A stretch of DNA of 64,000 bases from Phaeosaccion multiseriatum (GCA_965112735.1 OZ218955.1:2604001-2668000); one strand, 5' to 3'; positions 678 through 55,838 are shown, counted from the first letter of the stretch. Program-made: numbers and translations. The notes: a model not told the origin generated them from the sequence alone.

Positions 678-3600
678 CTAAAATGATGACAGGAGATGGC
701 AGTCTCTACAGCGCCACACGTGCGCCGTCTCGAGCGAGGAAAGGTTCTCCTCTTCCTTCTCCCCTGCGCAAGAGGTGTGAAACCACTTACCACACCCTGC
801 CTCCCCACCTTCTCCACCCTCCCCCCCGCATCGTATCAGCTGTGCCGTTGGCTCACGAGAGTCCCCGCACACGCTGCACGGCTGCTTCTCTGCTCCACGC
901 CCTTCTCCCTCCTCCCCCTCAGACGAGCCCTTCTCCTCTCCTTCCTCTCCTGGTGGCACCTTCGAGGACTCTTTCCCCTCTCCTGCTGGTGATGACTCTG
1001 GATGCTCCACGCTATCCAGGTCCGCAGCAGAAAGCGGAGACGTCGTGAATCCCTTACCCTTGCCCTTACCCTTCCGCTTCTTCTTCCTTCCTCCTCTCCT
1101 CCCCTTCCCGCCTCTCCCTGTTGCTCCCATTGTTACCCCCATCGTCGCTCCCATTGTTGATTCCATGCCTCCTTCCGGCTCTCCTCCTCCCTCTTCTTCT
1201 CCTCCTCCTGCTGCTGCTGCTGCTGCTGCGGTCGCGTTAGCGTCCACTGCCTGTTCAACTTCCTCCCCCTGTTTTCCCTCTTCATGCTCCTCCTTCTCTG
1301 CTGCTGCTGCTGCTGCTGCGGCGGGCGTGTTAGCTTCCACTGCCTGTTCAACTTCCTCCCCCTGTTTTCCCTCTTCAACCTCCTCCTCCTTCTCTGCTAC
1401 TGCTGCGGGCGCGTTAGCTTCCACTGCCTGTTTAACTTCCTCCTCCTGTTTTCCCTCTTCACCCTCCTCCTTGTCGCTGCCTGTTGCTGCTGCTGCTGCG
1501 GGTGTGTTACCTTTTACTGCCTGTCCTCCCCCCTGTTTCCCCTCTTCACCCTGCTCCTCCTTCTCCCCCTCCTTGTCGCTGGCTCCTGCTTCTGCGGCGG
1601 GCGTGTTAGCTTCCACTGCCTGTTCAACTTCCTCCCCCTCTTTTCCCTCTTCACCCTCCTCCTCCTTCTCTGCTGCTGCTGCGGGCGCGTTAGCTTCCAC
1701 TGCCTGTTCAACTTCCTCCCCCTGTTCTCCCTCTTCACCCTCCTCCTTGTCGCTGCCTGTTGCTGCTGCTGCTGCCGACGCGCCACCTTCCACTGCCTCT
1801 CCTTCGCCCTGTTTGCTCTCCTCCTCGTCCTCCTCCTTGTCGCTGCCGTCCCGATCAATGGACATGGACATAGAGAGGGTGCTGCCTGCCCCCTTCCCTG
1901 TGTCTGAGAAGCACGCCGCGTCATATACAGTCCTCTCCCACTCCTCATTCTCTGCCCCCCCTCCTTCTGCCTCCCCCCCTCCCTCTCCCTTCCCCTCTCC
2001 CCCTCCTCCTGCTTCCCCTGTCTCCCCTGTCTCCCCTGTCTGCCCTGCCTCGCCTCCGTCTCCCTCCCCTTCGTCTTCCTCGTCGCCGAAGATGCTTGTC
2101 ACAGTCAATGCATTCTTCTCTTCTCCGTCGTCGTTGCCGTCGTCGTTGTCGTTGTCGTCTTCGTCGTCGTTTGCGGTCTTTCCGAGAGCAAAGAAAGGGA
2201 ATAGCTCCTCGTCCCCTTCAGAGGGGAGAGAGAGGGGCCCTTCCTTGTGTGTGTCCTCCAGCTTGGTGTCCACCTTGGACACCTCGAACTTCTTCCCGCC
2301 TGTATCTGCCTCCTCGCCCTCCTTCTTACCCTCCTCTTCGGCGTCGGTCGTCTCCTCAGCTTCCTCCTTCTCCTCCTTTCCCTCGCCCTCCTTCTTACCC
2401 GCCTCTTTCAAGTCTGTATTTTCCTTCTCCTCCTCAGCTTCGTCCTTCGTCGCCTCGCCCTTCTTCACGCCTGCGTCTCCCTCGCCTTCCTTCTTGCCCC
2501 CTGCTTCCGCATCGGCCTCTGCCTGCACCTTCTCCTCCTGCTCTTCCTGCTTCTCTGCTAGCTCATCTCCCTCCACCACCGTTGGCTCCACACCATCCCC
2601 ATTACTCACATCTTTCACCACATCTTCTGATGGAGCACATGTGTAGTACAGGTTCAGATTCTCCGCACCTTCCCCCTCCCCTTGCTCCCCTTGCTCCTCC
2701 TTCTTCCCCTCTCTCTCCTTGCGCTTCGCCTCCTCCGCGTCTTTCCGTGCCCGCTCTCTAAGCGCGATGACCCACTCCCCCTTGTTGAGGTCAGCGTTCT
2801 TCTCCTTCGACGCCAACGCTGGCCCCTCCCCCCTGCCCCCAGCGGCCTTTGCGTCTCTTGACGCGTCCTTGTCCTTCCGAGGACTGCCCCCCCCAGTGCC
2901 CCTGAGCAGCGCCTGCACCCCCCCGGCCCCCTCCGCTTCCCCGTCAGCTGTGGACCCTCCCTTGCCCCCCTCGCTCTCCTCCTTCTCCTCCTTTTCGCTC
3001 TTCTCCTCAGCCGCCTTGGAAGGACTTCCGCCTCCTCCTCCGTCTCCTTCTTTTCCAGCGGCCGCCGCTGCTGCGCCCTGAGCGGCCTCTGCCAAGCTCT
3101 TTGTGGAGTCGCCGCTGCCTGCTGCTGCAGCTGCTGCTGGACTCTTGCTACTCTTGCTGCCGCTGCCGCCCCCACTCGCCCTCCTCTTGCCGTGCTTGCC
3201 CCCTCCCCCCTCCTTGCCGTCCTTGCCCGCCTCCTTTGCTAACTTGGCCTCTTTGTCAGCCCTCTCCTTCTTCTCTCTCTTCTCCTGCGCCTTGCGCTCT
3301 CTCTCCTTGGATTTCTCCTGCCTCTCCACGTGCTCTCGAGCCTGCGAATGGAGAGCCAACACAACACGCGCAGGACAGAGAGCGGGTACATACCGTACAG
3401 CTGAGTACACCTGAGCCGACCTTCCCCTCTCCAGTCGAAGCCACTTCACTCCACTCCACCCCACTCCTCCTCCTCCTCCTCCTCCTCCTCCTCCTCCTCC
3501 TCCTCCTCCTCCGCCTCCTCCTCCCCCCATCTCCTTCTCCGTCACCCCCTCCTCAAGCGAGCTCACTCACTCACTCACTCACTCACTCACCTCATCAAAG

Positions 3601-6600
3601 ACAAGAATGAACTTGTGAAGAGTGCTGAACAAGTAAGCGGGGGTGTGTTCGGGGTTCTCACCGAAGTACTCAATCACGCCCTGGGGGAGAGGGAGAGCGA
3701 GGAGGAGCAGAGGGAGGAGGAGGAGGAGGAGGAGGAGGAGGAGGAGGAGGAGGAGGAGGAGAAAGGGGAGGAGGGGGGACGGGGGGCAGGTCAGGTCTGG
3801 ACAGAAGAGCAGAGGGGTGAGAAACACTGTGCACCTCCCGTCCATATTGCAAGAGGGCACTATTCTCGGCACCAAAAGTAATAGGCCAGCAAAACACAGC
3901 CACCACCGCACCCTACTCACGCACCTTGAACCCCTCCTGCATGCCCTCAATCATCTTCTTGGACGCCTCGAGTTTGCTCTCTGCATCTCTTAAGAACAGC
4001 GCAAGCTTCACGCGCCGGTCCTTCAGCGGGTCCACAGCAGGAAGGTCCTCGGGCAGACGCATGGGGCTTTTGCTCCTACTCCTCGTGCTGCTCTTGAGCC
4101 GCCCACGGTCAAGCGGGTTCTCTTTCTCCTTCTCTTTCTCCTCCGAGGCGCCGTCGCTCACCTCGCGTCCCCCCCTCTCCCCCTCGTCCTTGCCCTTCTG
4201 CTGGCCCTTTTCGTCCCCCTTCTCCTCCTCCTCCTCCTCCTCCTCCTCCTCGCCGCTCTCCTTCTTGAGCTTGGAGCCATCCTTGGGCCCAAATCTGGAT
4301 CCAACTTTGGGGGACTTGTCTGTGGAGCCTGGTCTTGGAGATGCCCCCCCTGCACTATCAAAGTGCACCAAAACAGGGCCGCTAGGAGCTGAGAGCACAT
4401 GGGTGAGAGAGAGAGAGTGAGTGAGTATGAGGTAAGACAGACAGAGAGAAGAGGGGGAGAAAGAGAGAAAGACGATCAGAGCAGCGTCAGTGGCAGGCAG
4501 CAGCAGGTACAAAAGCACAGGCGCACTTTCAACCGAGGCAAGGAGGCAACGCAAGGGGATGAAACACACACGCACGCACTGTCACGCACGGCACGCACGA
4601 ACGGCGGCACGCAAGCACAACGAACCCCACACCTCCACACCTCGCACCTTCGTCTCCTCCTCCTCCTCCTCCTCCTCCGGTAGGGGTGAGGGCGGCGGTG
4701 CGCGGCTCAGACTTCATGGCGGCAAGGAGTCTCACCGCGCCGCTCCTCCTCGGGGTGCTGCCCGTGAGCGCAGCGCTGAGCAGCTCCGGGTCGGGCTGGA
4801 GCTCCTCGTCTTCGCTGACCATGTCCTTCAGTTTGGCGTACTCGCGTTCTAGACCCTGTTGCTCGGCCACAATGCTGTTGTAGGCATATAGGGAAAGGCG
4901 TATGGGTATGGGCAAAAGGTGTATGGGTTAGGGCAGGCATATGGGCAGGCAAGGGGGAGGCGTAGAGAATGCCTACGGTGGGCAGGAAGATGGATGGGCA
5001 GGGCAGGGCAGGGCAGGACAGGACAGGACAGGACAGGACAGGACAGGGCAAGCAAGCACAGCTCCCCTCACCCCAACAACTGGACTTGACTCACGTGGAG
5101 ATGAGGTAGCGGCTTGCTGGGAACACAAGGTCCAGGTCCTCCTTGAAACCCAGCAGCGGCTTGCTAAAGGCGCCCCCAGCCGCAGCATGCCCTCCCCCTT
5201 CCATGACGCGCCCTTCCCCCGAGGTCCCGCCACCCGGGGTCTGCACCCCCTGCACGCGGGCATCATGTCGCTTGACCAAGATGACGAGGTAGTGGAGGAT
5301 GGAGGTGCGCCCATCAAAGGCCTTGGAGGAGCTAAGGTTGAGTAGAAGGTCCAGGGTGAAGCCGTGTGTCTCCTTCTGATTGAGTTCGTTGCCCACCTTG
5401 AGGATAATGCCGAGGAGACGCTTCAGTCGGTACGAGGTGGTGACCTGCGAGGGAGTGGGTGAGTGGGAGTGGGTGGGTGGCAGTGGGTGGATGGGATGAG
5501 TGAGTGAGTGAGTGAGTGAGGGAAGGGAGGGACGTGAGTGTACGAGTGAGTGTGTGCCGTTCATGCGCTCGTTCGGAAGTGTCGGACCTGTGTGCACGCC
5601 TTGCTGATGGTGGCCGCGTCGTTGAGCATTGAGGAGAGCCTCTCTGCGAAGGCATGCCTGAACACCATAGACTTGAGCCGCACCACCCTGTTGGGCACCT
5701 TCACCATCTCCAGCATAAACCTGGGGTATAGAGGGGGAGGGGGGGGGGGTGGCAGATCAAGGGCAGGAGGAGGGACGTGAGGTACTGCTCTCTCTCTCTA
5801 TGTATATATAACTCTCTCTTTCTGAGACACACCACTTTACCACTGGATCTCTGACTTACTGGTCGGCCTTGGCAAGCAGCTTAGGGTCTCCTGTGTAGGC
5901 CTTGAGCGTGCTCTCCTCCTCCTTGTCGGGCATGAAAGCGATGAGCGATTGGCATTGCTCCACGTGCAGCTCCGAGATGTCCAGGCAGCGCACGGCCTGA
6001 GAGACGAGGGATAGGAGGAAGGGCAGGAGGAGGAGGAGGAGGAGGAGGAGGGACAGGAAGAGGAGGAGGAGGAGGAGGAGCAGGAGGAGGAGGGGGAGCA
6101 GGACGAGGAGGAGGAGCACCGGGAGGGGGAGGGCGAGACAGGGACACGCATGGTAGGAAGGAGCAAGGGGAAGGGGTGAGGGAGTGCGCGATCACTTGTT
6201 TCCTCTCCATGCATGCGTCGATGGATTGGAGCGTGTTCGAGGGAGGGTCTTGCATTCCTTGCATGACAGTACCTCGCGCATTTGCTCGTAGGTGAGTTTG
6301 ATGCGGGCAATAGCGATGCCGGTGTTCATGGCGCGTTTGCCGTCGATGAGAGAGATCTCCTTGGGTTTCTTGTCTTCCTTCTTCTCCACCTAGTTGGGTA
6401 GTAAGTCCGTGAGAGGGTGCACAGATGGATGAAAAGAACATACAGAGACATACAGAGAGGTAGGGCACACAGAGGCATATGGGCAGACAGTCAGCTCAAC
6501 ACGCTTTAAAGCTGCCTTCCCTCCTTCCTTCCCTCCCCTCTCTCTCCCCTCCTCCCTTCCTCTGTATCACCAACTCGCTCACCTTCTTCTTCTCCTTCTT

Positions 6601-9600
6601 CTGCCCGACCTTCTCCACGAAGAGCTCCTCGAACTCCTTCATGTCGATCTCCACATTGGTAAGCTCATCCTCTGCCTGTACCTGGTGTCAGTCAGACAGA
6701 CAGATAAGAGGCGTAGGGTCAGACAGCCAGTCAGTCAGTCAGTCAGTGAGTGAGTGAGTCAGTCAGCCAAACAGTCACTCAGTCCATAAGTCAGTCAAAC
6801 AGTCAGTAAGTCGTGTCAGTCAGTCGGTTGTGACAGTCAGTCAGTCAGTCCGTCCGTCATTCAGTCAGTCAGTCTTCAGTTAGTCAATCAATCAGTCAGT
6901 CAGCCCCAGCCAGTCAGTTCAGTCAGTCACTCAGACAGTACCTTGGCCCAGAGAGAGTTCTCTGACGGCTGCCGGGCCGCCACAAAGTGCAGCTTACGCC
7001 TTTTCTCCTGCGAAGGGGGTGAGAAGCACAGAGGGAAGAGGGGGGGAATAGGCAGAGGGGGCAGAGGGAGGGAGGGGAAGAAGGGGATGAAGGGGTGAGA
7101 GGCAACATAGCGTGATACGTATCACCAACACAGATACATACCTTAGGGATGACGACCTTCGCTCTTCCTGGCACAGGAGGCGGCGCCCCCCCTCCCTTCT
7201 TCCCAAAGGGCAGCCCGCCCCCTATACCACCCTTCCCCTTGAGCAAGCCTGGTGGGGGGGGCGGAATACCCTTGCCGAGTAGTCCCGGGGGCGGTGGGGG
7301 AATTCCGTTGCCAAGTAGCCCCGGTGGAGGAGGGGGGATGCCCGGCAGCGGGGTTGCTCCTGCTGTTGCTCCTGCTGCTGCTCCTGGGGCCGGTATCTGC
7401 TTGTCTGGGTCGTCCAATAATGCCGCATCGAGCTTCTCAGCCCCCATCTTCATCACCACAGCTCCTCTCGGAGTCCCCACCTTCAGCATCTTGAAAAACT
7501 TGGCATAGTCTGGATGGTCCTTTGCTGCCACAGTAGCAGGGCTTGCTGCTGCTGCTGCTGCTGCTCCCGGAGCCGGTATCTGCTTGTCTGGGTCGTCCAA
7601 TAATGCCGCATCGAGACTCTCAGCCCCCATCTTCATCACCACAGCTCCTCTCGGAGTCCCCACCTTCAGCATCTTGAAAAACTTTGCATAGTCTGGATGG
7701 TCCTTTGCTGCCACAGTAGCAGGGCCTGCTGCTGCTGCTGCTGCTCCCGGAGCCGCTATCTGCTTGTCTGGGTCGTCCAATAATGCCACATCGAGATTCT
7801 CAGCCCCCATCTTCATCACCACAGCTCCTCTCGGAGTCCCCACCTTCAGCATCTTGAAAAACTTTGCATAGTCAGGGTGGTCCTTTGCTGCCACAGTAGC
7901 AGGGCCTGCTGCTGCTGCTGCTGCTCCCGGAGCCGCTATCTGCTTGTCTGGGTCGTCCAATAATGCCACATCGAGATTCTCAGCCCCCATCTTCATCACC
8001 ACAGCTCCTCTCGGAGTCCCCACCTTCAGCATCTTGAAAAACTTGGCATAGTCAGGGTGGTCCTTTGCTGCCACAGTAGCAGGGCCTGCTGCTGCTGCTC
8101 CCGGAGCCGGTATCTGCTTGTCTGGGTCGTCAAGCAATGCCGCATCGAGATTCTCAGCCCCCATCTTCATCACCACAGCTCCTCTCGGAGTCCCCACCTT
8201 CAGCATCTTGAAAAACTTTGCATAGTCTGGATGGTCCTTTGCTGCCACGGTAGCTGGGCCGGCTGCTGCTTCTGCTACTGCCTCTCCCGCTCCTGGCGCC
8301 GGTATCTGCTTCTCGGGATCGTCAAGCAATGCCGCATCGAGATTCTCAGCCCCCATCTTCATCACCACAGCTCCTCTCGGAGTCCCCACCTTCAGCATCT
8401 TGAAAAATTTCGCATAGTCAGGGTGGTCCTTTGCCGCCACAGTAGCAGGGCCTGCTGCTGCTCCCGCTCCTGGCGCCGGTATCTGCTTGTCTGGGTCGTC
8501 CAATAATGCCGCATCGAGATTCTCAGCCCCCATCTTCATCACCACAGCTCCTCTCGGAGTCCCCACCTTCAGCATCTTGAAAAACTTCGCATAGTCAGGG
8601 TGGTCCTTTGCTGCCACAGTAGCAGGGCCTGCTGCTGCTGCTCCCGGAGCCGCTATCTGCTTGTCTGGGTCGTCCAATAATGCCTCATCGAGATTCTCAG
8701 CCCCCATCTTCAACACCACAGCTCCTCTCGGAGTCCCCACCTTCAACATCTTGAAAAACTTTGCATAGTCTGGATGGTCCTTTACTGCCACAGTACCTGG
8801 GCCGGCTGCTGCTTCTGCTGCTGCTCCCGCTCCTGGTGCCGGTATCTGCTTGTCTGGGTCGTCAAGCAATGCCGCATCGAGATTCTCAGTCCCCATCTTC
8901 AACACCACAGCTCCTCTCGGAGTCCCCACCTTCAGCATCTTGAAAAACTTTGCATAATCAGGGTGGTCCTTTGCCGCCACAGTAGCCGGGCCTCCTCCTC
9001 CTCCTGGTGCTGCTGCTCCTCCTGGTGCTGCTCCTGCTCCTGCCGCAGCTCCTGATACCAATCCTGCCGCTCCAGCCGGAATCTGCTTGTCGGGGTCGTC
9101 CAGCAAGGCAGGGTCTATATTCTCGGCCCTCATCTTATTCTCCACCACCGCCTTCGGAGCGCCCACCTTCAGTATCTTGAAGAACTTTGCCAAATCAGGA
9201 TGATCCTTCGCTGCCACCATAGGCACAGCAGCCCAAGGGGGAGGGCTGGAGGGAGGCGCGCAGCCTTCTGGGGCGGTTAGCTGAGCATCCGGCGTGTCTA
9301 AGACGGACGCATCCAGGCCTTCCGCTGCCATCTTGTGAGCTACTGCCCCCTGCGGCAGCCCCACCTTAAGCATGCGGAAGAATTTCTCGTAAGTGGGGTG
9401 ATCCTTCGCACACATCGTAGCCTGTATCACTGGTGCTGGTGCTGGTGCTGGTGCTGGTGCTGGGGACAATACAACGCCACCCAAAGCAGTAGCCCCCAGA
9501 GCAGACGACGTTGCCGCTGCGAAACCCTCCGGTGCTGGCAGTTGAGCGCTCGGATCATCCAACACGGAGGCGTCATCATCATCCTCTGACAGCAACCCCT

Positions 9601-12600
9601 CGGCCCTCATCTTGTTCACTACTGCGCCCCGTGGCGTGCCCACCTTGAGCATCTTGAAGAACCTTGCATAGTCAGGGTGGTCCTTTGCACTGATAGTCGT
9701 TGACAGGGAGGGAGGGGGCGCCTCCTCGATCGCTGCTTTCTCCGTCGGTGCTGCACCCGCGGTGCCGCCTGCTGCCATCCCAGAGCCCTCACCGCCCCTC
9801 CCTCCTCCTCCTCCTCCTCCTCCTCCTCCTCCTCCTCCTCCCCCACCGCCGCCACTCTGATTGGTCATCATCTGTATGAACTGCTCCGGCGTCAAGCCCA
9901 TCTTTCGCATGTGAGACGCGAGGGCCTGAATGTCTCCTTGGAGGGTGTTGGAAAGATCGATCTTCTTGCCGTCTCCCTCTGCCCCGCCTGCCCCCTCTCC
10001 CTCCCCTGCCCTAGCCACCTCGCCATCGGTGGAGTCTGGTTCCGGCCCCCCAAGCGCCGAACCGGGGGCTGCCAGGGTTTCCCCGAAGTCAATCTGCACG
10101 GGGCTTGCTGCTTCTGGCTTCTTCTCTGGTGACATCATCACTTCACCCGATCCCCCCGACACCCCCGCCCCTACGATGCCCACCACTGACTTGCTCCTCC
10201 CTCCTCCGCCCCGCCGCCAACCCGCTGCTGCTGCCCCCACTATTCCCATTAGGCCTCCCACGGGTCCTCCTCCTCCTCCTCCTCCTCCTCCTGCCGCTGC
10301 ACCCGCCCCTGCTGCGTTGGCTATCGATTCCTTGTCTGCCTCTGCCCTCGCTCGGCTCGCTGCTGGTGATACCCCGTCCTGCTGCTCCATGAGAGGCGCA
10401 GCAGCAAAGCCTCCGGACGTCTCGAGCTCGCGAGAGGTGCGGGTGCAGCTGAGTTCAGCACTGCCGGGGGGAAAGGGGTGAGTGAGTGAGTCAGTGAGGG
10501 AGTGGATACGTGAGTCAGTGAGGGAGTGGATACGTGAGTGAGTGGGTGGGAGAGGGAGTGAGTGAGTACGCGCGTGAATGAGAGAGTGAGTGAGCTGGGT
10601 TCAGCGCTGCTGGGGGGAAGGGGGCAACAGCCGATATCAAGCAAGTCAGAGAGGTGGTGGCAAGGAAGGAACGGCCTGCAGCAGCGTAAGTGGCGCCTTT
10701 GACTGAACTTGCACACTCATATCTCCAGGAGTAGCACTGCCACAGTGCGTCAGACAACAAGACAGAGACAGCAGACAGAGAGACGGACGGACGGAGAGAG
10801 AGTGGGGCGGATCAAACACGCACACGAACACAACACAACATGCCCACATACCCACGCACGCACCTTGAGATCGGTGAATGCGTTCCTGACGCGTTGAGGG
10901 CCTTGGTCATTGTCGCACCCAACGACTCCTGCGGAGACTTCGACCTCGAAGAAGCTCTTGGAGACCTCGACCCGGAGTCCTTCGCTTCCTTCTTCTTCTT
11001 CGCCTTGTCCGCGAGGGGTGAGTATGGCGAGTGCGGGGAGTGTGGGGAAAAGTCACGGAAGAGTCTTCCTCGGGACGGAGGGGTGGCAGCAGAGGAGGGG
11101 GAGGCTTCCGCGCCCCTCCCTCTGCTGCCATCTGCCCCAGCAGCAGCGAAGGGGCTTGGGCCCGCCCCTGTCGCCGCCTCGGGGGTGTGCCGAGGGAAGT
11201 CACGGAAAAGCACCCCCCTTGGGGAGGCCACCTTTGATGCGTCGATACGATCCGTATCTAATGCTGCTCGCGTTAGGACAGGAAGGGAGAAGAGGGAGGG
11301 AGGGAGGGATGGAGGGGGGCAGGGGTAGGTGCTAAGTCCTGCATCCAAACTGCCTTGTTACACCCAAACTGTCGCGCAAGCGGTGGCACAGTAAACAAGA
11401 CCCACCACCATTCCCCAGAGGAGAAACACCGCAGTGAAAACCCCGTCTACTCGCCGCCACCCACACCCCCCTGGGGAGGCCACCCACCTGGAGTCGTCTG
11501 CTTCTTCGCTCCACTTCGCCCTGCCACATGCCCCCTCGGGCTTACCCCAGGGCTGAGCTCCTCTGCTCCCGTGGGAAAGAAAACAGATCCTCTTCCTCCT
11601 GCCCCTGTCGAAGCTGCCGAAGACGAACGTGCGGACCCCCCCAAAGACGAGTCCCGTCCTTCTCTGACACTATCCCCGCCTCCTAACGCCGTGGCAAGGT
11701 CTGCTTCCGCCTCCTCCCTGCAGGTGGGGCAAGACCACGAAGAGAACATCTTCCGAAGATACTGCTCGTGGTGCGTCTTTTCCGCTCGAGATGTGAGCCG
11801 GAAAGGAATCCTCTTCTCGCCAACGCAAAAGGTGTGATACTGCAGTCCTCCGCAGCGCCCACTGCACGTCACCAACTGATCCTTCTGTAGGGGGTCCTCA
11901 CACTCACAAGTGGAGCTTGCGCAGCGGAAGGAAGACGAGGCACCGATGGCCTTCGAGAGGGGCCGGGAGGAAGAGGACGAGGAGGAGGAAGCGGGCGGGG
12001 GAGACGTGGCAGCAGTGGCGGCCGTCCCCGCACTGGCCGCAGGAGACACAGGAGGGGACCGGCCGCTCCTCTTTGCATGTCTGACGGAGAGACTCGGTGA
12101 CCGCTTGGGAGAGCGAGCACCACTTGATGATGGCAATGCCTCTGGTGATGCCAGGGATAGTGCCGAGGCGCCCCCACCGAAGCTCGACGCCACTCGCTGC
12201 CGCCGCCCCTTGGAGGCAGCCACGCTGTCGGTCGCCCCCCCCCCCCCCGCCAGACGTGAGGGCGGCCTTCAGGCTAGACTTGGGCAGAGCCGGGGACAGA
12301 GAGCGGACGGCTGTGGCTTCGCTGCCACTGCCGCGGCCTCCGGTCCTAGACCCCGCCCCGCCCCCGCCCCCCCAGTGATCCCTGCTGCTACTGCTGCTGC
12401 TCCCATCACCCCCTTGCTTGACAATGCCCTGTATAGAGCGGCGTTGCCGATGCCCCCCTCCGCGGCTGATGAGAAAGTCGCTGCGTCGCCCCCCCTCCAG
12501 CGGTTGCGAGGGTGAGGGTGGGGCGGACGACTGCGGCGAGCTGCTTCCACTGCCATCGGTATCCAACTCCTCGTAATCATCATCGTCGTCCTCCTCTTCC

Positions 12601-13198
12601 TCCTCATCCTCCTCTTCCTCAGAGGAGCTCTCCATCGACACGCTCATACGCCCCGGTAGGTCCGTCTCCGTCATGAGCTCAATTGCCCCGTTCACGTTAT
12701 TGTTGGTGAGCTGCAGAGCCAGGGTGGAGGCCTGGGGAGGGTAGCCAATGCCCAGCAGCTTCTCAATCTTCTGAAGAGCAGGGTTCATGTAGTGGAAGCT
12801 GCTGATGTCTGCCAGACCCATCAGACACGCCTTGGCCCCGCCTGCCACATCCTCCCCTGACACCGGGCCGCTCACCCCTCTGCCCACGCCGTCGCCATCC
12901 TCATCGTTGCACATGATGAGCTGCAGGCTGAAGTCCTCTTCGTCCACCTGACCCTTGTAAGGAGGCATGAGGTCCACTCCGCTCAGCTTCACAATCACCA
13001 CGTTGCCTGAGATGAAGCCTTTTGGAAGTCGGGCAGAAGGGGTCAGTCAGAGGTGCGAGGAGGGAGGTGAGTGGTTGAGGGGTTGGGGAGATGAGGGTGG
13101 GGGGAGGGGCTTGACGTCATGGGGTTATGAAAGAAGTGGGGCGGCGAGCGGAGTGTATGAGAGAGTACAATGATAGGTGCTACTACTACTATTTACCA

Positions 13199-13247
<49 letters not shown>

Positions 13248-14314
13248 TTACTACTACTACTACTACTGTCGCTGCTACTGCTACTTCTACTACAACTGTT
13301 GCTACTACTCCTCCTCCTACTACTACTACTACTGCAACTGTTGCTACTACTACTGCTACTACTACTGCTGCAACTGCTGCTACTACTACAACTGTTGCTA
13401 CTACTGCTACAACTACTTCTACACTTTGTGTCATCACTACCACTATTACCACAACTACTACTACCACTTCCACCACTACGAGTAAGTATTCGCTTATAGT
13501 CCGTGTGCAGTTGAAGTGTCTGAGCAGCACGTGTGGTACCAGCACGACGAGTACCACTAGCAATAACTACTACTACAAGTACCACACACACACACACCAC
13601 ACACACCAACCCCCACCACTACCACCACCACCACTACTACACCAGTAAGTAAAACAAGTGTAGCAATCACACCTGTACAGTTGCAGTATCTGAGCAGCAC
13701 GTGGTCCGTATTGTTGGGGTCGTCCTCCTCGTCTGCAGGATTGGGCGGGAAGCGCACTATGATGGTGAACTCGCCACACAGGGTCCGCTCCACCTGTGCC
13801 GGAAAGGTCAGGGGCAGGGGCAAGAGCAAGGGTAAGGGCAAGGGCAAGGGCAGGGGCAGGGGCTAGCGACATCTTCGTCCCCACATCTCTCTGTTGCTAT
13901 CTCTCTCTCTCTCTCTCTCTCTGTGCACACCATGGTGCACCATCCAATACAGACCTTGTAAAACCCCATTCCGTCCTCCGGCTCCCAGTTCATCATGCCG
14001 GGATCAGACTTCTCCGACGAATACAACACGTGCTCCGTCCCGTGCACTTCAATGATGGGGGACGCGTCCATGGGCAGCCCCGTCAGCGTGATGGCATTCA
14101 ACTTGAGCATTACGGCATGAGGGGCCCGGCCTTCGCTAATCAGAGTGTCGAAGTTTTGGAAGAAGGTGTTGAGGGAGGGGGGGAGGTTGGCAATCCACTT
14201 GTCTGTGTTGGTGGTGGAGCCGAGGCGCAGAAGCAACACCCGCTCCAGACTGTCCCGAATCGTTCTGTTTTTGTGCGGTGGGTGGGAGCGAGCGTGCGTG
14301 TGTGTGTGTGTGTG

Positions 14315-14358
<44 letters not shown>

Positions 14359-15718
14359 GAGGGCGCCACATAAGACAAAAAGCAAGCCGACAGCTGACAA
14401 TTGTGGCATGAGAGAGCGAAGGAGTGGCGGCCATGTACAGGCACAGGTGCAGAGGTCTCTCCACTTCAGAGCACGCACTCCATCCACATTGCGCTTTCCC
14501 GCCACTTCTCCCTGGCTTGCCACTGTCCTTCCTTCTGCACCCCAATACCCCCACGCGGTGCTCTCCTTTTGCTTTCTCTGTGCTCTCCCTCCCCCCCCCC
14601 TCCCCCCAATCCCCCTTCCTTCCTTCCTTCCTTCCTTCCTTCATTGCTTGCTTGCTTGCTTGCTTCCTCTCTTTCTTCATTCCCTCCCACCTCTCTTGCT
14701 CGCTGAAGCGAAGGTAGCACGACAGGAGGAGGATGGTGCGAACACGGCCATTGGCGCAGTAGATGGTGGCCACATTGTCCGCCCGCAGATTCAGCCAACC
14801 CTAAGTAGAGCAGAGTAGAGTAGATGCGTAGCGGACGAGGAAGGAGGAGGAGCGAAAGTCAGGAAGGGATGGGCGGCGCCACGGCGGGGTGACAAGATCG
14901 GATAGACCTGGGCCGAGCATATGGGAAGGCGAAAGTGCTTCTGCTTGCGAGGGGAGCACTACTTTTGTGTGCATAGCAAGGGTCGGTATCTGCCGAGAAT
15001 AGGACAATCCTGATCCGCTCCTTCCCTCCGCTCCTTCCCTTGAGAGGCAGGGCGTCACACCCCGTCCTGCTTGTTCCCCACCCACACACGAACCTTTAGG
15101 CTATAGCAGAAGCGCAGCATGGTCTCCAGGGAAGGGAAGGATGCTTTCCGCTTCTTGTTGGACCAGGGCACGTCCAGCACCTGGTTCCCAAGCTTGGAGT
15201 AGATGTCCTTCAGCTGGCGTCGCAGAGGGAGGGGGCGGGGGAGGGGAGGGAGGGGGTGAGCAGCAGAGGTGGGAAGAGTCCAGGAGAAGCCGTGAAGGCC
15301 ACAACAGACCCATGCTAGGGGCGTCGCGGCATTCGAGTCTTTCCCCCCGTGCAGACGTCTGTCCCAAGCCAGGGAATGACACCTATTTCAGTTGCCCTGC
15401 TCCTCGATGATCGTTTGTTCCCCCACCTACCTCTGCACTGTCAATAGCCTGCGCATCTGTGATGTTCCACACCAGGTACCTGCCCTTCCCGTGGGTGGTC
15501 TCGAGATACTTGACGAGCTCGTCGATGTTGTTCTTTCCCTCTTTGAGATTGGTCTCGCCGAGGGAAGGCTTTCCCATGGCAATGAGTCTCTTTCCCCCTC
15601 CTCCTGCCGAAGCCTTTTCTGCGCCTCGTCCCTCATCCTCGCTCTTCTCCGGTTGGCGGCCTGAGATGTAAGTGAGGTCCAGCTGGTCATTACGAGCCCC
15701 ACCGAAGAAGCGGAGCAT
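678..15718 (-). CDS. Giant multi-exon formin: PTEN/tensin-type phosphatase + C2 + UBA + PHD + 12x CCDC53-like repeats + FH1 + FH2 + acidic tail + PHD
   Basis: Exons read on the minus strand (approximate): 15431-15718 (DLTYIS..RLIAMGKP..NNIDELVKYLETTHGKGRYLVWNIT), 15095-15213, 14691-14800 (WLNLRADNVATIYCANGRVRT), C2 exons ~13954-14265, ~13674-13793 and ~13010 downward, UBA ~12665-12790, PHD ~11718-11925, large exon ~7142-10460 (repeats + polyproline FH1). FH2 exons: ~6942-7008 (KRRKLHF..SLW), ~6582-6682 (FEELF), ~6273-6389 (ISLIDGKRAMNTGI), ~5860-5996, ~5600-5720, ~5093-5444 (ILKVGNELN..GFTL..SILHYLV), ~4650-4877, ~3924-4385, ~3590-3680 (YFGE..LFSTLHKFILVF). Last exon 678-3341. One 1-nt frameshift is required at the C14 run 12235-12248. 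Confidence 0.85.
1210..1850 (-). repeat. ~7 degenerate acidic repeats (EKEEEGEEGKQGEEVEQAVEANTPAAAA) in the formin tail
   Basis: Seen directly in the translation of 678..3566 and in the recurring DNA 'gcgttagcttccactgcctgttcaacttcctcc'. Confidence 0.85.
3590..7345 (-). other. FH1 (three GIPPPPPG tracts) and FH2 domain, split over ~10 exons
   Basis: Lasso (LHF..SLW), FEELF, LIDGKRAMNTGI, GNELN, GF.L..L..L...K, YFGE and F..L..F motifs typical of FH2. Confidence 0.9.
7380..9700 (-). repeat. 12 tandem coding repeats (~58-64 aa) of a CCDC53/WASHC3 C-terminal-like motif
   Basis: Consensus TVAAKDHPDYAKFFKMLKVGTPRGAVVMKMGAENLDAALLDDPDKQIPAPG, counted 12 times. The 9 copies at ~7380-8990 are near-identical at DNA level (~174-192 bp period). 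Confidence 0.9.
13178..13640. repeat. Intronic (CTA/ACT)n-derived trinucleotide tract
   Basis: Long tactactac run with degenerate variants inside a formin intron. Confidence 0.9.
13674..15718 (-). other. PTEN/tensin-type phosphatase and C2 domains of the formin
   Basis: DLTYI / RLIAMG / YLVWN / WL..DNVATIYCANGRVRT..LSCYL align by eye with PTEN motifs. They are followed by beta-rich C2-type exons (LKLNAITLTGLP..PIIEV, LCGEFTIIVRF, VLLRYCNCTG). Confidence 0.8.
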
Positions 15719-15928
15719 GGTAGCACTTGGCGCCTCAGGCCACAGCAGGTAGGAGTGCCAAGGGCGGGGAAATCATCACCCACCCAACCTGGCGCCCCTC
15801 CGCCAGCTTCTTTCCCACCCTCTTCTCTTTCTCTTCCCTCTGTCCCTCCTTTGTCGCTCCTCTCGCTCCGTCGCTCTCGCTTTCTCGCCACTTCCTTCTC
15901 TCCTTCTCTTCTCCTCCTCTCTCTCTTG

Positions 15929-16765: not shown

Positions 16766-19558
16766 TGTTAGCCTCCAAGCCAAGGGCAGTGACGACCCTT
16801 CCCGGAACAGCTCTCAGTAGCCTCCTAGAGGCCTACCGCTCACTCCAAGATAGACGAGATGTGCGTACTGACTGATCAAGTGGAGTGTGTGTATTTAATA
16901 GACGTTGCTAAGGTCCAATACCACGATGTGCTTGTCCTTACACTTGCCTCCATGTCCGGTATGTCCTTGTCCTTATCACTTTTGCCTCCTACACGGCCTT
17001 GTCACTTCCCTTTGCTCCCTACACGGCCTCATCCCTTTGCCCCCACACGCCCTCGTCACTGAACCGCCCCTCCCACTGTCCCGAATTTGACCGAAATAGA
17101 CCTCCTCGATGTTTTGCCCCTTCCTTACATATGGCGCCCCTCTGAAGACCCTGCTCACTCCGTTGAGCATACTGACCCATTCGCTAAGTACTTCCTGACC
17201 CCTCTGCTTTTGACCTTCTCCAACAAGACCCAAGACTCCTTCTGTGGTGAGTCCGCCCCGTACACGACTCTTGCCAAGACCACTTGCACTGTGCCACCAG
17301 CCATCCTCCGCGAAGAAAAGTAAAAGAGCCACATGCTCTCGCACCACGCCCTTTTAGCTGTATTGACCCTGCCGGTTGCCCCTTGCCCTATTGGCCGAGT
17401 TACTGTCCTTCTCGGTCTGCCCCCATTGTCCCTGTTTTGTTGTGTTGCTCCCGTTTCACCCCCTCCTGTTGTGCTGCTGCTGCTGTGCCCTTTGTTCTCC
17501 CTCGGTCTCTGCTATGCCCTCTTCTCTGCCGTCTGTCTCTGCTGTGTCCTTTGTTCTCCATCGGTCTCTGCTGTGTCCTCTTCTCTGCCATCGGTCTCTG
17601 CTATGCCCTCTTCTCTGCCGTCTGTCTCTGCTGTGTCCTCTTCTCTGCCGTCTGTCTCTGCTGTGTCCTTTGTTCTCCATCGGTCTCTGCTGTGTCCTTT
17701 GTTCTCCCTCGGTCTCTGCTATGCCCTCTTCTCTGCAGTCTGTCTCTGCTGTGTCCTCTTCTCTGCCGTCTGTCTCTGCTGTGTCCTCTTCTCTGCCATC
17801 GGTCTCTGCTGTGTCCTCTTCTCTGCCATCGGTCTCTGCTGTGTCCTCTTCTCTCATTTGTCTCTACTGCGTCCTCTTCTCCGCCCTTGGTCTCTACTCT
17901 CTTCCTGTTCTCTGCCATCTGCTCTCTGTCCTCTTTGTACTCTGCCCTCAGTCCTCTGCTCTCTGTCTTCGTTGTACTCTGCTCTCTGTCCTCTGTCCGC
18001 TGTCCTCTTTGTACTCTGCCCTCTGTCCTCTGTCCTCTGTCCTCTTTGTACTCTGCCCTCTGTCCTCTGTCCTCTTTGTACTCTGCCCTCTGTCCTCTGT
18101 CCTCTTTGTAATCTGCCCTCAGTCCTCTGTCCTCTGCTCTCTGTCTTCGTTGTACTCTGCCCTCTGTCCTCTGTCCTCTTTGTACTCTGCCCTCAATCCT
18201 CTGTCCTCTGCTCTCTGTCTTCGTTGTACTCTGCCCTCTGTCCTTTGTCCTCTTTGTACTCTGCCCTCAATCCTCTGTCCTCTGCTCTCTGTCTTCGTTG
18301 TACTCTGCCCTCTGTCCTCTGTCCTCTTTGTACTCTGCCCTCTGTCCTTTGTCCTCTTTGTACTCTGCCCTCTGTCCTCTGTCCTCTGCTCTCTGTCTTC
18401 GTTGTACTCTCCCCTCTGTCCTCTGTCCTCTTTGTACTCTGCCCTCTGTCCTTTGTCCTCTTTGTACTCTGCCCTCTGTCTCTGTCCTCTTTGTACTCTG
18501 CCCTCAGTCCTCTGTCCTCTGCTCTCTGTCTTCGTTGTACTCTGCCCTCTGTCCTCTGTCCTCTTTGTAATCTGCCCTCAGTCCTCTGTCCTCTGCTCTC
18601 TGTCTTCGTTGTACTCTGCCCTCTGTCCTCTGTCCTCTGTCTTTATCCTCTTGTCCTTCTCCCTCTCCTTGCCCTTGCCCTTGTCCTTGTCCTTGCCCTC
18701 TCCCTTGTCCTTGCCCCTGTCCTTGCCCTTGCCCTTGCCCTTGTCCTTGTCCTTCTGTCTGCAAACATCCCTTGCCCTTGTCCTTGTCCTTGTCCTTCTG
18801 TCTGCAAACGTCCCTTGCCCTAGTCCTTGTCCTTGCCCTCTCCCTTGTCCTTGTCCTTGTCCTTGCCCCTGTCCTTGTCCTTGCCCTTGTCCTTCTCTCT
18901 GCAAACATCCTTTTGTCCTGCGCTCCTAGCCTGCACTTCTGTCCTCCAAATCCCCATCACCCCCGCTTTCGCCAACGCTTCTGCCCGCTACAGCACATCC
19001 CCGTCCACGGCGCCGCTTCTGCCCGCTAGCACCACGTCACCCTCCTCATCGCCTCCTCCTCCGTCAATTGTTGCTCCTCGCCCGCCTTGCTGCCGGCCCG
19101 CGTGGCTCTCCTGCTAGTCGACATGCTGCGTCGAGACTCGCCCCCCCCCGATTGAATGAGCTCAGCGACCCTGCTGAAGCCGCCTTGCACGCGAGAGTCG
19201 AATGGATGCGTCGTTACCAAATGTTAGCCTCCGAGCCAAGGGCAGTGACAACCCTTCCCGGAACAGCTCTCAGTAGCCTCCTAGAGGCCTACCGCTCACT
19301 CGAAGATGGATGAGATGTGCGTCCTTTCATTTTGACACTCCTTGTCCTTACACTTGCCTCCATGTCCGGTGTGTCCTTGTCCATATCACTTTTGCCTTCT
19401 GCACGGCCTTGTCACTTCCCTTTGCCCCCTACACGGCCTTGTCACTTCCCTTTGCCCCCACACGGCCTCGTCACTGAACCGCCCCTCCCACTGTCCCGAA
19501 TTTGACCAAAATAGACCTCCTCGATATCCAATGTTGATGTCATGCCCATACACTTACA
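16766..19558 (+). mobile_element. Putative non-autonomous LTR-like element (TRIM/LARD-like): two ~340-360 bp direct repeats around a minisatellite-filled core
   Basis: 16766-17110 and 19222-19525 are clearly homologous and both start TGTTAGCCTCC. The alignment extends loosely to 'cttaca' at 17129 and 19558. No gag/pol ORF, no clean TSD and no PPT. Confidence 0.45.
17480..18920. repeat. Compound pyrimidine-strand minisatellite array
   Basis: ~30-bp unit (ctgtgtcctcttctctgccgtctgtctctg), then ctctgtcctctttgtactctgcc-type units, then a (ccttgt/ccttgc)n hexamer. Confidence 0.9.
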
Positions 19559-21119: not shown

Positions 21120-23795
21120 ATGGCGGGCGAAGCTGTCGTGTTTGGCGGTGGGCTGAGGGGTAGCGCTGCGATCGTGTCCGGGGCAGCACCGTCGATCAAC
21201 GGGGCCAAGTCCTTGGCGGAGGCGAAAATCGTTGACGGGACCAGGGAGTCGGGAGGAGAACCTGCCGGGCTCACTGGCAGTGGCAAGATACGGGCTCAGG
21301 GCTTCGGGAGCAGCGCCCCTCGACCCTGCGTGGTTGGTGGCTCGCCCGGAGGGCCGCCAACAGGGGCGGCCGCCCGCCGTCGGTCCTCAGGAGACATCTC
21401 GGCCAGCACGCTGAAGAAGGCCTCAGGCCCGGCCAGCAGCAGCCCCAGGCCAGCGTGGGGGGCTGGAAACGGCGGAGGAAGCAGGCCTGGTAGTGGTAGG
21501 CTGGAGAGGAGGGGCAGCAGTGGAAAGGTGGAGAGGACGAACAGCGCTGGGAGCCTCCAGAGGGAGGGGAGCGGCAAAATTGGGGGCACGCAGCCGCGAC
21601 CGGCATGGGGGGGTGGGGGTGGCGGGGGAAGCAGACCCGGCAGTGGAAGGCTCGAGGTGGGTGGCAGCAATGGAAAAATGGAGAGGACCAACAGCGGAGG
21701 CATCCAGAGGGCGGGCAGTGGGAGTGGAAGTATCCCAAAGGCGGGGAGCGGCAAGCTCAGGGGCGGTATTGTCCGTGTAGGATCTCGGGGCCAGGGCTTT
21801 GGGAGCGGCTCTGCTCGCTTCCAGAGTGGCAGCGACGAGCCCAACTTGGGCGGGTCTGGCCGCTTCGGGTCGCAAAATTCGCTTTCGCGCTCCATGGAAG
21901 CCAGGAGGCGCTCTTCTGCCGACTCCACTGCCGACGCCGCCGCCGAGGCTGCTGCTGCTGCACCTGCTGGCGATGCTCCAGCAGCAGCCGAGACGGATGG
22001 ATCAGCCGACGTGGGCGCCACCGACGACCGGGAGGGGGAAGTGGCAAGAGACAGCGATGAAAATAACGTCCTTGAAACGCCAGCCCCGATTTCGACGACA
22101 CCGACACCGGCACCTGCATCTGCACCGGCTCCTACGCTGGCACCCAGCTTGGTGAACAAGCTGGTGAGGGGCTTCAGCAGCAAGAAGAAGAAGAAGGCAG
22201 CCAAGGCCGAGCAGGAAGAGCAAGCACGGCGGGAGCAGCTGGCTCAGGAGGAGGAGGAGGAGGAGGCCCGAAGGACTCAGGAGGCGTTGGAAAAGGCCAA
22301 GCAGGAGCAGGAGGAGAGGCGGCAGCAGCGACTCATTGAGCAGCAGCGGGACGAGGAGCAAGACGAGGAGGGCAAGGCCAGAGAGCAAGAGAGGTTGGAG
22401 AAGGAGGAGGAGGCTCGCGTGCGAGAGCGGCTGTTGCAGCGCCAGCAGGCCAAGAAGCAGAAACTCGAGCAGGAGAAGAAGGAGCAGGCAGACCGAGTCA
22501 AGCAGAGGCAGGAGAAGCACCGCGCCAAGCAGCAGGCCATTCTCAAGCAGCGCCAGGAGGAGGCTGCCAAGGCGATCCAGAAGCGAGAGACCACCCGCTC
22601 CAAGCTCAAGCCCAGGACGACGGCGGCAGCTCGGCAGGCGGCATTGCAGAAGCCGCTGGGCACTAAGCCCGGGACGGCGCCTGCTCGGCAGCCGCTGCAG
22701 ACCAGGCAGACTTCCAAGCTGGCCGCCAGGCAGGACAAGCCGGCGCCTGTACGACAGCGTCAGCAGAAACAACAACAACAGCACCAGCAGCAACACTTCC
22801 AGCGTGAGGAGGAGGTGAAGGAGGAGGAGGAGGAGCAGCAGGAGGGAGAGGAGGAGGAGGGAGTGCAGGAGGGCGAGGAGGACTCCTTGTTGGCCTCTGT
22901 GTCTGGCGACTCTGCCTCAGAGTCTGAGGAAGAAGAGTCCGACGACGACGAGGAGGAGGAGGAGGAGGAGGAGGAGGAGGAGGAGTACTCGGGGTCTGAG
23001 TCCGGGGAGTCTGTGGAAGAATCCGAGGGGGAGGAGGTGGAGGGAGAGGAAGTGGAAGTGGAAGAGGAGGAAGAGGAGGAGGAGGAAGAGTCAGAGGAAG
23101 AGTCGGAGGGATCGGAGTCGGAGGAGGAGGAGGGGGAGGAGGAGTCCGATGAAGAGTCTGAGCACATGGAGAGCAGCGGGGCTGGTGTTGCAGCAGAACG
23201 GTCGCAGAACGGGAATGCGGTCATGAACTTGAGTATGCCCGAGAAGTTCTCCGATCCTCCCTCCGCCGTACCCACGGCTTCGCTGGAGTCTTCCCCAGCC
23301 ACTGCCGACTCTGGGAATGGCGCTGGTGGTGTCCGCGGCAAGGGCTTTGACGTGGCCGATGCCAGCAGCTCCACCCAGCAGGCGCAGGAGCAGGCCGCGA
23401 ACAACAAGATGAGCAAGGAGGAGGAGGAGGAGGTGCTGCAGAACTTCATGGAGATGATGGTGGGCGGGGATGGCATCGTGGTGCAGAAGAAGAGAAGGAG
23501 CGACAAGAACAAGAGCGACACGCGAGTGCTCAAGTACAACCCCAACAAACAGACGCTAGTCTGGTACGGAGAGAAGCGCGCCATTCTGGGCACTAGCGTC
23601 AACGGCATCTTCCTCAGGGATGTCACCAGCGTCTATTCCAAGGCCAATGTCCTCTTCCTCAAGACTACCGGCTCGTGGGCGCAGTTCGACATGGATCGCG
23701 AGGCGGACGCATCGATGCTGGCCACTGGCCTCTCCATTATCGTGCCGCACGCCAAGAGGGATGCCGAGGCGCAGGGCAAGTCAGTCGCCAAGTGA
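21120..23795 (+). CDS. Intronless 891-aa protein: Gly/Ser-rich N-terminus, coiled coil, acidic tract, C-terminal PH-like domain (PLC/Num1-Mcp5/ISP-type)
   Basis: Single ATG-TGA ORF with strong coding bias. The C-terminal ~110 aa (GIVVQKKRR..TRVLKYNPNKQTLVWYG..IFLRDVTSV..LFLKT..QFDMDREADASMLATGLSIIV) show a PH strand pattern plus the terminal helix. Confidence 0.75.
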   Translation: MAGEAVVFGGGLRGSAAIVSGAAPSINGAKSLAEAKIVDGTRESGGEPAGLTGSGKIRAQGFGSSAPRPCVVGGSPGGPPTGAAARRRSSGDISASTLKKASGPASSSPRPAWGAGNGGGSRPGSGRLERRGSSGKVERTNSAGSLQREGSGKIGGTQPRPAWGGGGGGGSRPGSGRLEVGGSNGKMERTNSGGIQRAGSGSGSIPKAGSGKLRGGIVRVGSRGQGFGSGSARFQSGSDEPNLGGSGRFGSQNSLSRSMEARRRSSADSTADAAAEAAAAAPAGDAPAAAETDGSADVGATDDREGEVARDSDENNVLETPAPISTTPTPAPASAPAPTLAPSLVNKLVRGFSSKKKKKAAKAEQEEQARREQLAQEEEEEEARRTQEALEKAKQEQEERRQQRLIEQQRDEEQDEEGKAREQERLEKEEEARVRERLLQRQQAKKQKLEQEKKEQADRVKQRQEKHRAKQQAILKQRQEEAAKAIQKRETTRSKLKPRTTAAARQAALQKPLGTKPGTAPARQPLQTRQTSKLAARQDKPAPVRQRQQKQQQQHQQQHFQREEEVKEEEEEQQEGEEEEGVQEGEEDSLLASVSGDSASESEEEESDDDEEEEEEEEEEEEYSGSESGESVEESEGEEVEGEEVEVEEEEEEEEEESEEESEGSESEEEEGEEESDEESEHMESSGAGVAAERSQNGNAVMNLSMPEKFSDPPSAVPTASLESSPATADSGNGAGGVRGKGFDVADASSSTQQAQEQAANNKMSKEEEEEVLQNFMEMMVGGDGIVVQKKRRSDKNKSDTRVLKYNPNKQTLVWYGEKRAILGTSVNGIFLRDVTSVYSKANVLFLKTTGSWAQFDMDREADASMLATGLSIIVPHAKRDAEAQGKSVAK

Positions 23796-29724: not shown

Positions 29725-29756
<32 letters not shown>

Positions 29757-55761: not shown

Positions 55762-55838
<77 letters not shown>

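Follow-up and report, generated by a model that had tools for sequence, protein, structure and literature searches.

A probable single-gene PTEN-class formin with UBA, PHD-type and CCDC53-like modules in Phaeosaccion multiseriatum

The minus strand of a 64,000-nucleotide stretch of Phaeosaccion multiseriatum DNA (GCA_965112735.1 OZ218955.1:2604001-2668000; the whole of this stretch is called the window below) carries, between positions 15718 and 678, the coding modules of a very large formin. The locus is probably one gene, predicted to encode a stramenopile PTEN-class formin of ~3,500 residues, and this formin would belong to a conserved ochrophyte subfamily in which a UBA domain and an atypical PHD-type finger are placed between the PTEN-C2 part and the actin core. 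Stop-to-stop translation, combined with a search for junctions that keep the frame, gave a model of 19 exons with GT-AG splice sites and about 3,506 residues (Table 1). The start ATG lies at 15718, with an in-frame stop upstream of it at 15773-15775, and the terminal stop codon occupies 678-680. The 17 introns of the model have ordinary donors (AAG/GTATGT, GAG/GTGAGT, CAG/GTGGGT and similar), and their acceptors are mostly pyrimidine-rich. The formin region as a whole is eukaryotic in character, intron-rich, about 58% G+C, and contains much low-complexity sequence. All modules which the initial annotation had assigned to this part of the minus strand were recovered there by profiles, by the splice model and by AlphaFold2 (AF2) modelling. 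Open reading frames (ORFs) on the opposite strand and in the flanks of the locus matched no Pfam family.

Table 1. Exons and protein modules of the formin locus. Positions are those of the window; a slash marks the exon-intron boundary of a donor.
Feature	Position	Strand	Content
Exon 1	15431-15718	-	ATG and N-terminal part of the PTEN-like phosphatase, LDLTYI motif; donor GAG/GTAGGT at 15430
Exon 2	15094-15213	-	Phosphatase, region of the PTEN general-acid loop, without Asp; acceptor 15214 or 15208
Exon 3	14691-14800	-	P-loop YCANGRVR
Exon 4	13955-14249	-	First part of the PTEN-type C2; donor AAG/GTCTGT at 13954
Exon 5	13673-13793	-	Middle of C2; followed by a 654-nt intron
Exon 6	12248-13018	-	End of C2, UBA (12639-12797), acidic Ser/Gly-rich linker; frame 2
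G14 homopolymer	12234-12247	-	Site of the frame change, frame 2 to frame 0
PHD1 exon	11488-12232	-	Ser/Ala/Pro-rich linker and PHD-type finger 1 (11669-11956), frame 0; donor CAG/GTGGGT at 11487
Exon 7	10864-11266	-	Low-complexity linker; donor AAG/GTGCGT at 10863 paired with a pyrimidine-rich acceptor at 10461
Exon 8	7142-10460	-	12 CCDC53-like repeats (7373-9697), then FH1 (7142-7342); donor AAG/GTATGT at 7141
FH2 exons 1-5 of nine	7007-6942, 6681-6583, 6389-6273, 5996-5860, 5720-5588	-	
FH2 exons 6-9 of nine	5444-5095, 4874-4648, 4388-3925, 3680-3591	-	
Last exon	681-3341	-	FH2 end, acidic tail, RKKKRK patch (1071-1088), PHD2 (699-878); junction GAG/GTGAGT 3590 to CAG 3342

The FH1 region comprises three GIPPPPPGLL tracts and one APPPVPG tract, and a single intron separates it from the first FH2 exon. 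The pieces that match the FH2 family of Pfam (PF02181) are collinear (profile positions 66-107, 100-148, 148-195 and 192-264), and one FH2 exon alone reaches 57.1 bits against a cut-off of 34.8. The spliced FH2 aligns to positions 2-248 and 290-357 of the 358-residue FH2 of a homologue, itself a Pfam match over positions 10-371, and the domain is complete. The domain is interrupted by a low-complexity insert of ~200 residues, both the NxxI and the GNxxN motif can be seen by eye, and its last helix runs on into the exon of the tail. All FH2 exons preserve the frame across canonical splice sites, and strong GT-AG junctions connect FH1 with FH2 and FH2 with the tail. The repeats and FH1 lie together in one open frame of 1,225 codons, for which the shuffle maximum was 455 codons.

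The PTEN-like phosphatase and the C2 domain are spread over five exons between 15718 and 12900, and because of this split Pfam returned no match on the single exons of the region. A family profile (A1) was therefore compared with the spliced product; it was built from 14 homologues with the window sequence excluded, and the spliced N-terminus of the window matched it over positions 15-303 (E 2.7e-72). Among solved structures, profile A1 found the PTEN-like domain of auxilin (3n0a, E 7e-18 over phosphatase and C2), PTEN itself (1d5r, 4e-13) and Ci-VSP, and one homologue (P0095) gave a full-length Pfam PTEN_C2 match of 16.7 bits, which is sub-threshold. The P-loop of the window keeps the Cys and Arg of the HCX5R motif and has Tyr in place of His, so that the motif is not intact; in the family alignment C, N and G of the P-loop are kept in at least 90% of the members. 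At the place equivalent to PTEN D92, the general-acid loop reads VPWSNKKRKASFPS, without an acidic residue, and none is conserved in the family consensus, with moderate confidence since the loop was aligned by eye. The replacement of His by Tyr and the lack of a visible general-acid Asp make it unlikely that the phosphatase module would be catalytically active. The same kind of P-loop, with Arg (and Cys) and without His, has been described in the PTEN-formins of diatoms and Phytophthora (Grunt et al., 2008, PMC2386819). The intron at 13019-13672, which interrupts the C2 part, holds a trinucleotide microsatellite of ~370 bp that reads as poly-Thr, poly-Val or poly-Leu-like runs depending on the frame.

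Between C2 and the repeats, two further modules were recognised. The UBA of the window reaches 22.9 bits with Pfam PF00627, slightly above the cut-off of 22.4, and that of homologue P0005 gives 27.8 bits, and 29.1 bits with UBA_7. The profile of a five-member UBA family matched UBA domains exclusively in the PDB, with USP13 as the best (7e-7) and USP5, UBAP1 and E2-25K among the others. The first PHD-type finger (PHD1) is weak in the window copy (Pfam PF00628, 10.6 bits), and homologue P0093 gives 21.3 bits. An alignment of seven members (A2) displays the order CxxC, CxxC, x4-H-xx-C, CxxC; its columns C, H, C, RIPF, W and CxxC do not vary, and RIPF marks an insert characteristic of the family. 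In the window copy Ser occupies the first Cys column, and a Cys stands two residues before it and another two residues after it, so that it is uncertain whether this copy binds zinc. The PHD1 family profile matched only PHD fingers in the PDB, at about 1e-4. The AF2 model of PHD1 has a mean predicted local distance difference test (pLDDT) of 75.6, and the 50 best Foldseek neighbours of this model are all PHD fingers, at E 0.2-1.7, none of them individually significant.

Behind FH2 the predicted protein continues into an acidic tail rich in Glu, Gly, Ala and Lys. Its 886 residues, close to the ~900 of the initial annotation, lie inside an open frame of 962 codons, and the longest frame among 1,000 Markov shuffles was 394 codons. 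The DNA of the tail contains tandem repeats of 84-93 bp, and an in-frame putative PHD finger (PHD2) closes the protein. PHD2 retains all eight C4HC3 ligands, with 8 extra Gly/Glu residues inserted between the third and the fourth. The full-length Pfam match is 21.9 bits, below the cut-off of 24, and the PDB matches are PHD fingers only, with Pygopus as the best (1.3e-3) and PHF8, PHF2 and ING2 among the others. Sixty-five residues upstream of PHD2, an SV40-like basic patch, RKKKRK, stands within GRRGGRKKKRKGKGKGKG; a nuclear localisation signal in the formin tail is possible.

To place the locus among known proteins, relatives were collected with the repeat exon. An exhaustive profile search returned 1,138 proteins and was of more use than a word-index search, which low-complexity words swamped and which gave only 9 matches. 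Among the best 150 of the 1,138 proteins, about 40 have an N-terminal PTEN-C2, repeats in the middle and a C-terminal FH2. By family profiles, six representatives carry PTEN-C2, UBA and PHD1 before the repeats, five more are partial or truncated versions of this arrangement, and thirty possess PTEN-C2 without UBA or PHD1. Relatives of the formin are found in Pinguiococcus, Ectocarpus, a chrysophyte, a diatom, a labyrinthulid and oomycetes; together with the kinase exons described below, they point to a stramenopile source, probably an ochrophyte, that lacks a close relative in the protein collections searched. Neither the formin itself nor a near-identical protein was present in the protein collections searched, in which the best identity was 55%. 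In a PTEN-C2 tree restricted to rows with at least 200 profile positions, the seven rows with UBA or PHD, including the window, stand behind one branch with support of 97/98, apart from 29 PTEN-formins without UBA or PHD. The ochrophyte formins P0093, P0095, P0163, P0166, P0167 (chrysophyte H1), P0005 (Pinguiococcus pyrenoidosus) and CAM9254483.1 (Ectocarpus fasciculatus, partial) share the module order and the PTEN-C2 clade of the window. They differ from it in having 4-10 repeats rather than 12, most are 1,200-2,000 residues long, and the Pinguiococcus pyrenoidosus formin has no detectable PHD1. The N-terminal architecture is not singular: the series PTEN-C2, UBA, PHD, repeats, FH1, FH2 is conserved in an ochrophyte subfamily, and at least a dozen predicted proteins of stramenopiles show it, those of a chrysophyte and of Ectocarpus fasciculatus among them. 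This subfamily is already contained in public protein sets, but without a name or a description.

Three homologous loci are of particular value for the question whether PTEN through FH2 is one gene. In a metagenome contig (L003), PTEN-C2, UBA, PHD1 and repeats form one uninterrupted ORF of 1,199 codons, and FH2 follows about 100 nt downstream. A second locus (L002; JGI 3300016873 Ga0186505_100003) has C2 and UBA, a gap of 10 N, and then PHD1, repeats and FH2, all on one strand and open up to and from the gap; its intron-free ORF of 6.1 kb indicates that it is probably a transcript assembly. In the third (L001; Ectocarpus fasciculatus CAXNAF020000195.1), PTEN-C2, PHD1, repeats and FH2 stand in collinear order inside 6 kb; towards the end of FH2, an intron occupies the same protein position as the 3590/3342 intron of the window. 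The public gene calls understate this architecture, because at the 10-N scaffold gap of L002 (787-796) what is probably one ORF was called as two genes, one with C2-UBA and the other with PHD1-repeats-FH2. The Ectocarpus fasciculatus formin, in turn, is annotated as a partial product of 860 residues, with PTEN-C2 coding sequence upstream on the same strand. A separate gene for a dual-specificity phosphatase of 142 residues (L001, 10985-11413) lies 2.6 kb downstream of this Ectocarpus formin.

In the window the chain from PTEN to FH2 is interrupted. The exon with UBA is open in frame 2 (to 11907) and the PHD1 exon is open in frame 0, in which a stop at 12269-12271 confines the frame switch to ~36 nt, among them 14 consecutive G. 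For an intron between UBA and PHD1, 155 frame-compatible GT-AG pairs were listed, and no donor among them resembles those of the other 17 introns. Since none of these pairs is gene-like, the step from UBA to PHD1 was taken as a frame break and not as an intron. The start and stop of the model coincide exactly with the ends given in the initial annotation; the exon chain has good GT-AG junctions at 17 introns and is broken in frame at the G14 run between UBA and PHD1. Miscounted homopolymers are a frequent error of assemblies, and the frame change is most likely an error of this type in the length of the run. The run itself, as a 14-G stretch in coding sequence, could disturb any annotation of the formin gene.

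The break also invites a different explanation, namely two or three adjoining genes: a PTEN-C2-UBA gene which ends in frame 2 at 11907, a PHD1-repeat-FH1-FH2 formin, and perhaps a separate product with the tail and PHD2. This division would account for the position of the break, precisely between UBA and PHD1, and for a tail and PHD2 that have no counterpart in any homologue; moreover, exotic formin architectures can be artefacts of gene prediction (Grunt et al., 2008, PMC2386819). The homologous loci nevertheless speak for continuity, as the single ORF of L003 from PTEN through the repeats argues against two genes and the other two loci are collinear. Frame 0 offers no ATG upstream of PHD1 from which a separate formin could begin, and the tail shares the exon and the frame of the last FH2 helix, with 886 codons free of stops. 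Adjoining genes are consequently judged unlikely, and the best reading is that PTEN through FH2 would form a single gene, as the comparison with L001-L003 favours. The same comparison speaks against the possibility, raised with the initial annotation, that transcripts might separate the PTEN-UBA-PHD part from the FH2 part.

If the frameshift at G14 were real, the locus could instead be a decaying copy, whose protein is truncated after UBA and whose downstream exons are drifting. A frameshift at a homopolymer, the non-canonical first Cys pair of PHD1 and the strong divergence of PTEN-C2 would all fit such a copy. The state of the downstream part does not: two long frames, of 1,225 and 962 codons, have stayed intact there, against shuffle maxima of 455 and 394, the FH2 exons are all in frame through canonical splice sites, and each of the 12 repeats still reaches 70-80 bits with the family profile. 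Taking into account also how common homopolymer miscounts are in assemblies, decay is considered very unlikely, and the one-gene formin remains the preferred interpretation.

Several observations weigh against this interpretation, or against parts of it. The change of frame from UBA to PHD1 is impossible in the sequence as given, which encodes no continuous product at this point. The exon model is a prediction from genomic DNA; exon 7 and several choices of acceptor find no support among the homologues. The window PHD1 departs from the canonical first Cys position and has a low Pfam score of its own. The PTEN-C2 branch of the window is very long (2.62), with identity of at most 32%, and its placement in the tree may therefore be an artefact, or some exons may have been modelled wrongly. 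The tail and PHD2 are missing from every homologue examined: no relatives of them were found by local phmmer (150 proteins), by tblastn (three loci), by a metagenome pattern scan or by a word-index search with residues 880-962, and the homologues end, at the level of the loci L001-L003, ~80-190 residues past FH2 and carry neither an acidic tail nor a second PHD. Finally, the functional statements made below go beyond domain identity and are inferred from the roles of the same families in other proteins.

The distribution of the C-terminal part bears on a further claim, that of a formin bracketed by two PHD fingers and carrying a UBA. Here the elements have to be separated. UBA and PHD1 are common to the subfamily, whereas the tail and PHD2 were seen at this locus alone, and the description as bracketed by two PHD fingers consequently applies, among the loci examined, to this one, where the single open exon and the terminal finger in its frame support it. 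The acidic tail with PHD2, and hence the two-PHD bracketing, appears specific to this lineage. The large size, the acidic tail and the second PHD are probably a lineage-specific elaboration and of lesser general importance.

The repeats deserve separate consideration. Exactly 12 tandem copies of ~48 residues are present, as had been counted initially, both by Pfam CCDC53 (PF10152, E 5e-141 over 12 stretches) and by the repeat family profile, and each of them is a copy of the C-terminal module of that family. A 13th, degenerate repeat had been considered upstream of the first (near model residue 1130) and was rejected, as the repeat profile did not detect it even with filters off. Nine of the 12 copies form a 180-bp DNA tandem array (7363-9011) with 89% matches, which points to recent expansion; the number of repeats could also be mis-assembled. 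A count of 12 stands at the upper end of the range, as the maximum among the hits is 11 and the median 5. An AF2 model of the repeat unit has three helices (pLDDT 85.8), with a conserved Gly-x-Pro turn after helix 1. Foldseek with this model returned nothing below E 0.8 and thus no significant structural neighbour, and a suspected likeness to the villin headpiece was dropped for want of Foldseek support. A phmmer search of PDB sequences with three repeats gave a designed helical repeat protein (E 0.03) as its sole match.

The homology to CCDC53, a subunit of the WASH complex, had led to the suggestion of a tie with the WASH/endosomal machinery, according to which the protein would be a WASH-linked endosomal nucleator whose repeats recruit or mimic the complex. 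The homology between the repeats and the C-terminal part of the CCDC53 family of Pfam is genuine, and the automatic annotation of some relatives reads 'Formin Homology 2 Domain/Subunit CCDC53 of WASH complex'. The match of the window repeats is, however, restricted to positions 100-147 of the 147-position profile. Nothing corresponds to positions 1-99, the N-terminal two thirds, the region with the helix that assembles CCDC53 with WASH and FAM21; in the repeats of homologues, the best stretches begin at profile positions 69-94. Moreover, the same module occurs before FH1 in hundreds of stramenopile formins, and it stands directly ahead of FH1 in PTEN-type and Drf-type formins alike, including the Drf-type formins of oomycetes. 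In the literature, a full-text search for CCDC53 or PF10152 in combination with formin or FH2 gave no relevant result. A WASH connection is thus not implied by the repeats and is regarded as highly improbable. By their occurrence before FH1 across hundreds of stramenopile formins they behave as a mobile module, presumably with a partner of its own, and the constancy of this position suggests a role connected with the assembly core and not with the WASH complex.

There is a second possibility for the repeats. Every one of the CCDC53-like repeats is matched weakly and in part by the UBA family profile, and a profile-profile comparison assigned 51% probability over 29 columns. The CCDC53 C-terminal module might accordingly be a divergent UBA-like bundle of three helices, and the protein, which would then have twelve such modules before FH1 in addition to its canonical UBA, a highly multivalent sensor of ubiquitin or ubiquitin-like marks that starts actin assembly on ubiquitin-marked membranes. 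The likeness of profiles and the three helices of the AF2 model give only a hint in this direction, and the proposal is held to be quite unlikely. If true, it would provide the first function for the C-terminal domain of WASHC3.

With these restrictions, a mechanism can be proposed for the predicted one-gene formin. The FH2 domain would dimerise, nucleate actin filaments and stay on the growing barbed end, while the short FH1, with three to four polyproline tracts, may supply profilin-actin to it. The probably dead PTEN-like phosphatase and C2 could act as a phosphoinositide or membrane anchor. The UBA may recognise ubiquitin or a fold similar to it, and PHD1 a ligand that is a peptide or a lipid, and the assembly of filaments would thereby be placed at a membrane site that carries several marks. 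The 12 three-helix modules would form a long beads-on-a-string segment just before FH1, presumably a general accessory of stramenopile formins. With the acidic tail, the basic patch and the Pygopus-like PHD, the last FH2 exon may have been extended in this lineage specifically.

The PTEN-like module at the beginning of such a protein has known counterparts. That of auxilin is catalytically inactive. The auxilin/GAK domain, the best solved-structure match of the family profile over both halves, is paired with clathrin-binding and J domains and not with FH1-FH2. Plant class II formins are similar to the present one in that an inactive PTEN-like module serves as a membrane or lipid anchor for FH1-FH2; in work on moss class II formins, the PTEN-like module reportedly mediated anchoring to lipids. 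The plant proteins differ in that the P-loop Arg has been lost, whereas the stramenopile ones keep it (PMC2386819), and in the absence of UBA, PHD and CCDC53 modules. PTEN-formins of the composition PTP-C2-FH1-FH2 have been described for plants, heterokonts, fungi and choanoflagellates (PMC2386819, PMC5628938), so that the PTEN-FH2 fusions mentioned at the outset are indeed published, as are those of stramenopiles. An independent origin of the PTEN-formin fusion was argued by Grunt et al. (2008, PMC2386819), and heterokont PTEN-formins were grouped with the opisthokont ones, not with plant class II, by Pruyne (2017, PMC5628938).

The stramenopile PTEN-formins (PMC2386819, PMC5628938) are the closest published relatives of the locus, with which they share an N-terminal PTEN-like module and C2 ahead of FH1-FH2 and a P-loop that has Arg and Cys and no His. 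Compared with their published form, the locus is distinguished by UBA and PHD between C2 and FH1, by 12 CCDC53 modules and by the 886-residue tail with a second PHD. No UBA, PHD or CCDC53 modules are mentioned for stramenopile formins in Grunt et al. (2008, PMC2386819) or Pruyne (2017, PMC5628938). In WASHC3/CCDC53 (PF10152), the likeness is limited to the last 48 profile positions, and the locus differs by tandem copies inside a formin. The combination of FH2 and PHD has one listed precedent, FOZI-1 of C. elegans, which has FH2, zinc fingers and PHD and was the sole FH2+PHD protein in the 2008 survey (PMC2386819); it is a metazoan nuclear factor, listed without FH1, PTEN or UBA, and its architecture is unrelated to that of the locus. 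The initial observation is thus in essence borne out, and the locus represents an elaboration, specific to its lineage, of a subfamily that is conserved but undescribed and falls within a known class of formins; it is not a one-off architecture.

It is by their non-catalytic domains that formins determine where in the cell actin is assembled, and the most varied formin architectures known are those of the stramenopiles, the group to which brown algae, diatoms and oomycete pathogens belong. The combination of a PTEN anchor with a ubiquitin-binding domain and a PHD-type reader provides testable hypotheses on targeting for the organisation of actin in algae. The C-terminal module of WASHC3 is, in addition, a mobile unit that occurs up to 12-fold before FH1, which makes stramenopile formins a good place to find its ligand.

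Elsewhere in the window, other features were observed. At 17284-18929, ~1.6 kb of C/T-rich degenerate tandem repeats are open in all three plus-strand frames (Cys/Leu/Ser-rich); the strand skew is extreme there (GC skew -0.49, AT skew -0.77), and the stretch is probably non-coding and satellite-like. An 891-residue low-complexity ORF lies at 21120-23795, and its last ~110 residues resemble a PH-type domain by eye. The region 28297-32995 includes a 795-residue plus-strand ORF with Gly/Met/Pro repeats (GGMPPMGGAGPPMGG) followed by very long poly-Glu runs, and mirror Ser/Pro-rich ORFs stand opposite. A 727-residue plus-strand ORF at 59574-61757 shows ankyrin repeats by eye. The exons of a mitochondrial kinase of the PDK/BCKDK type were recognised at 54980-56839, with best matches to xanthophyte and brown-algal proteins, those of Heterococcus, Ectocarpus, Choristocarpus and Tribonema, at only 41-46% identity.

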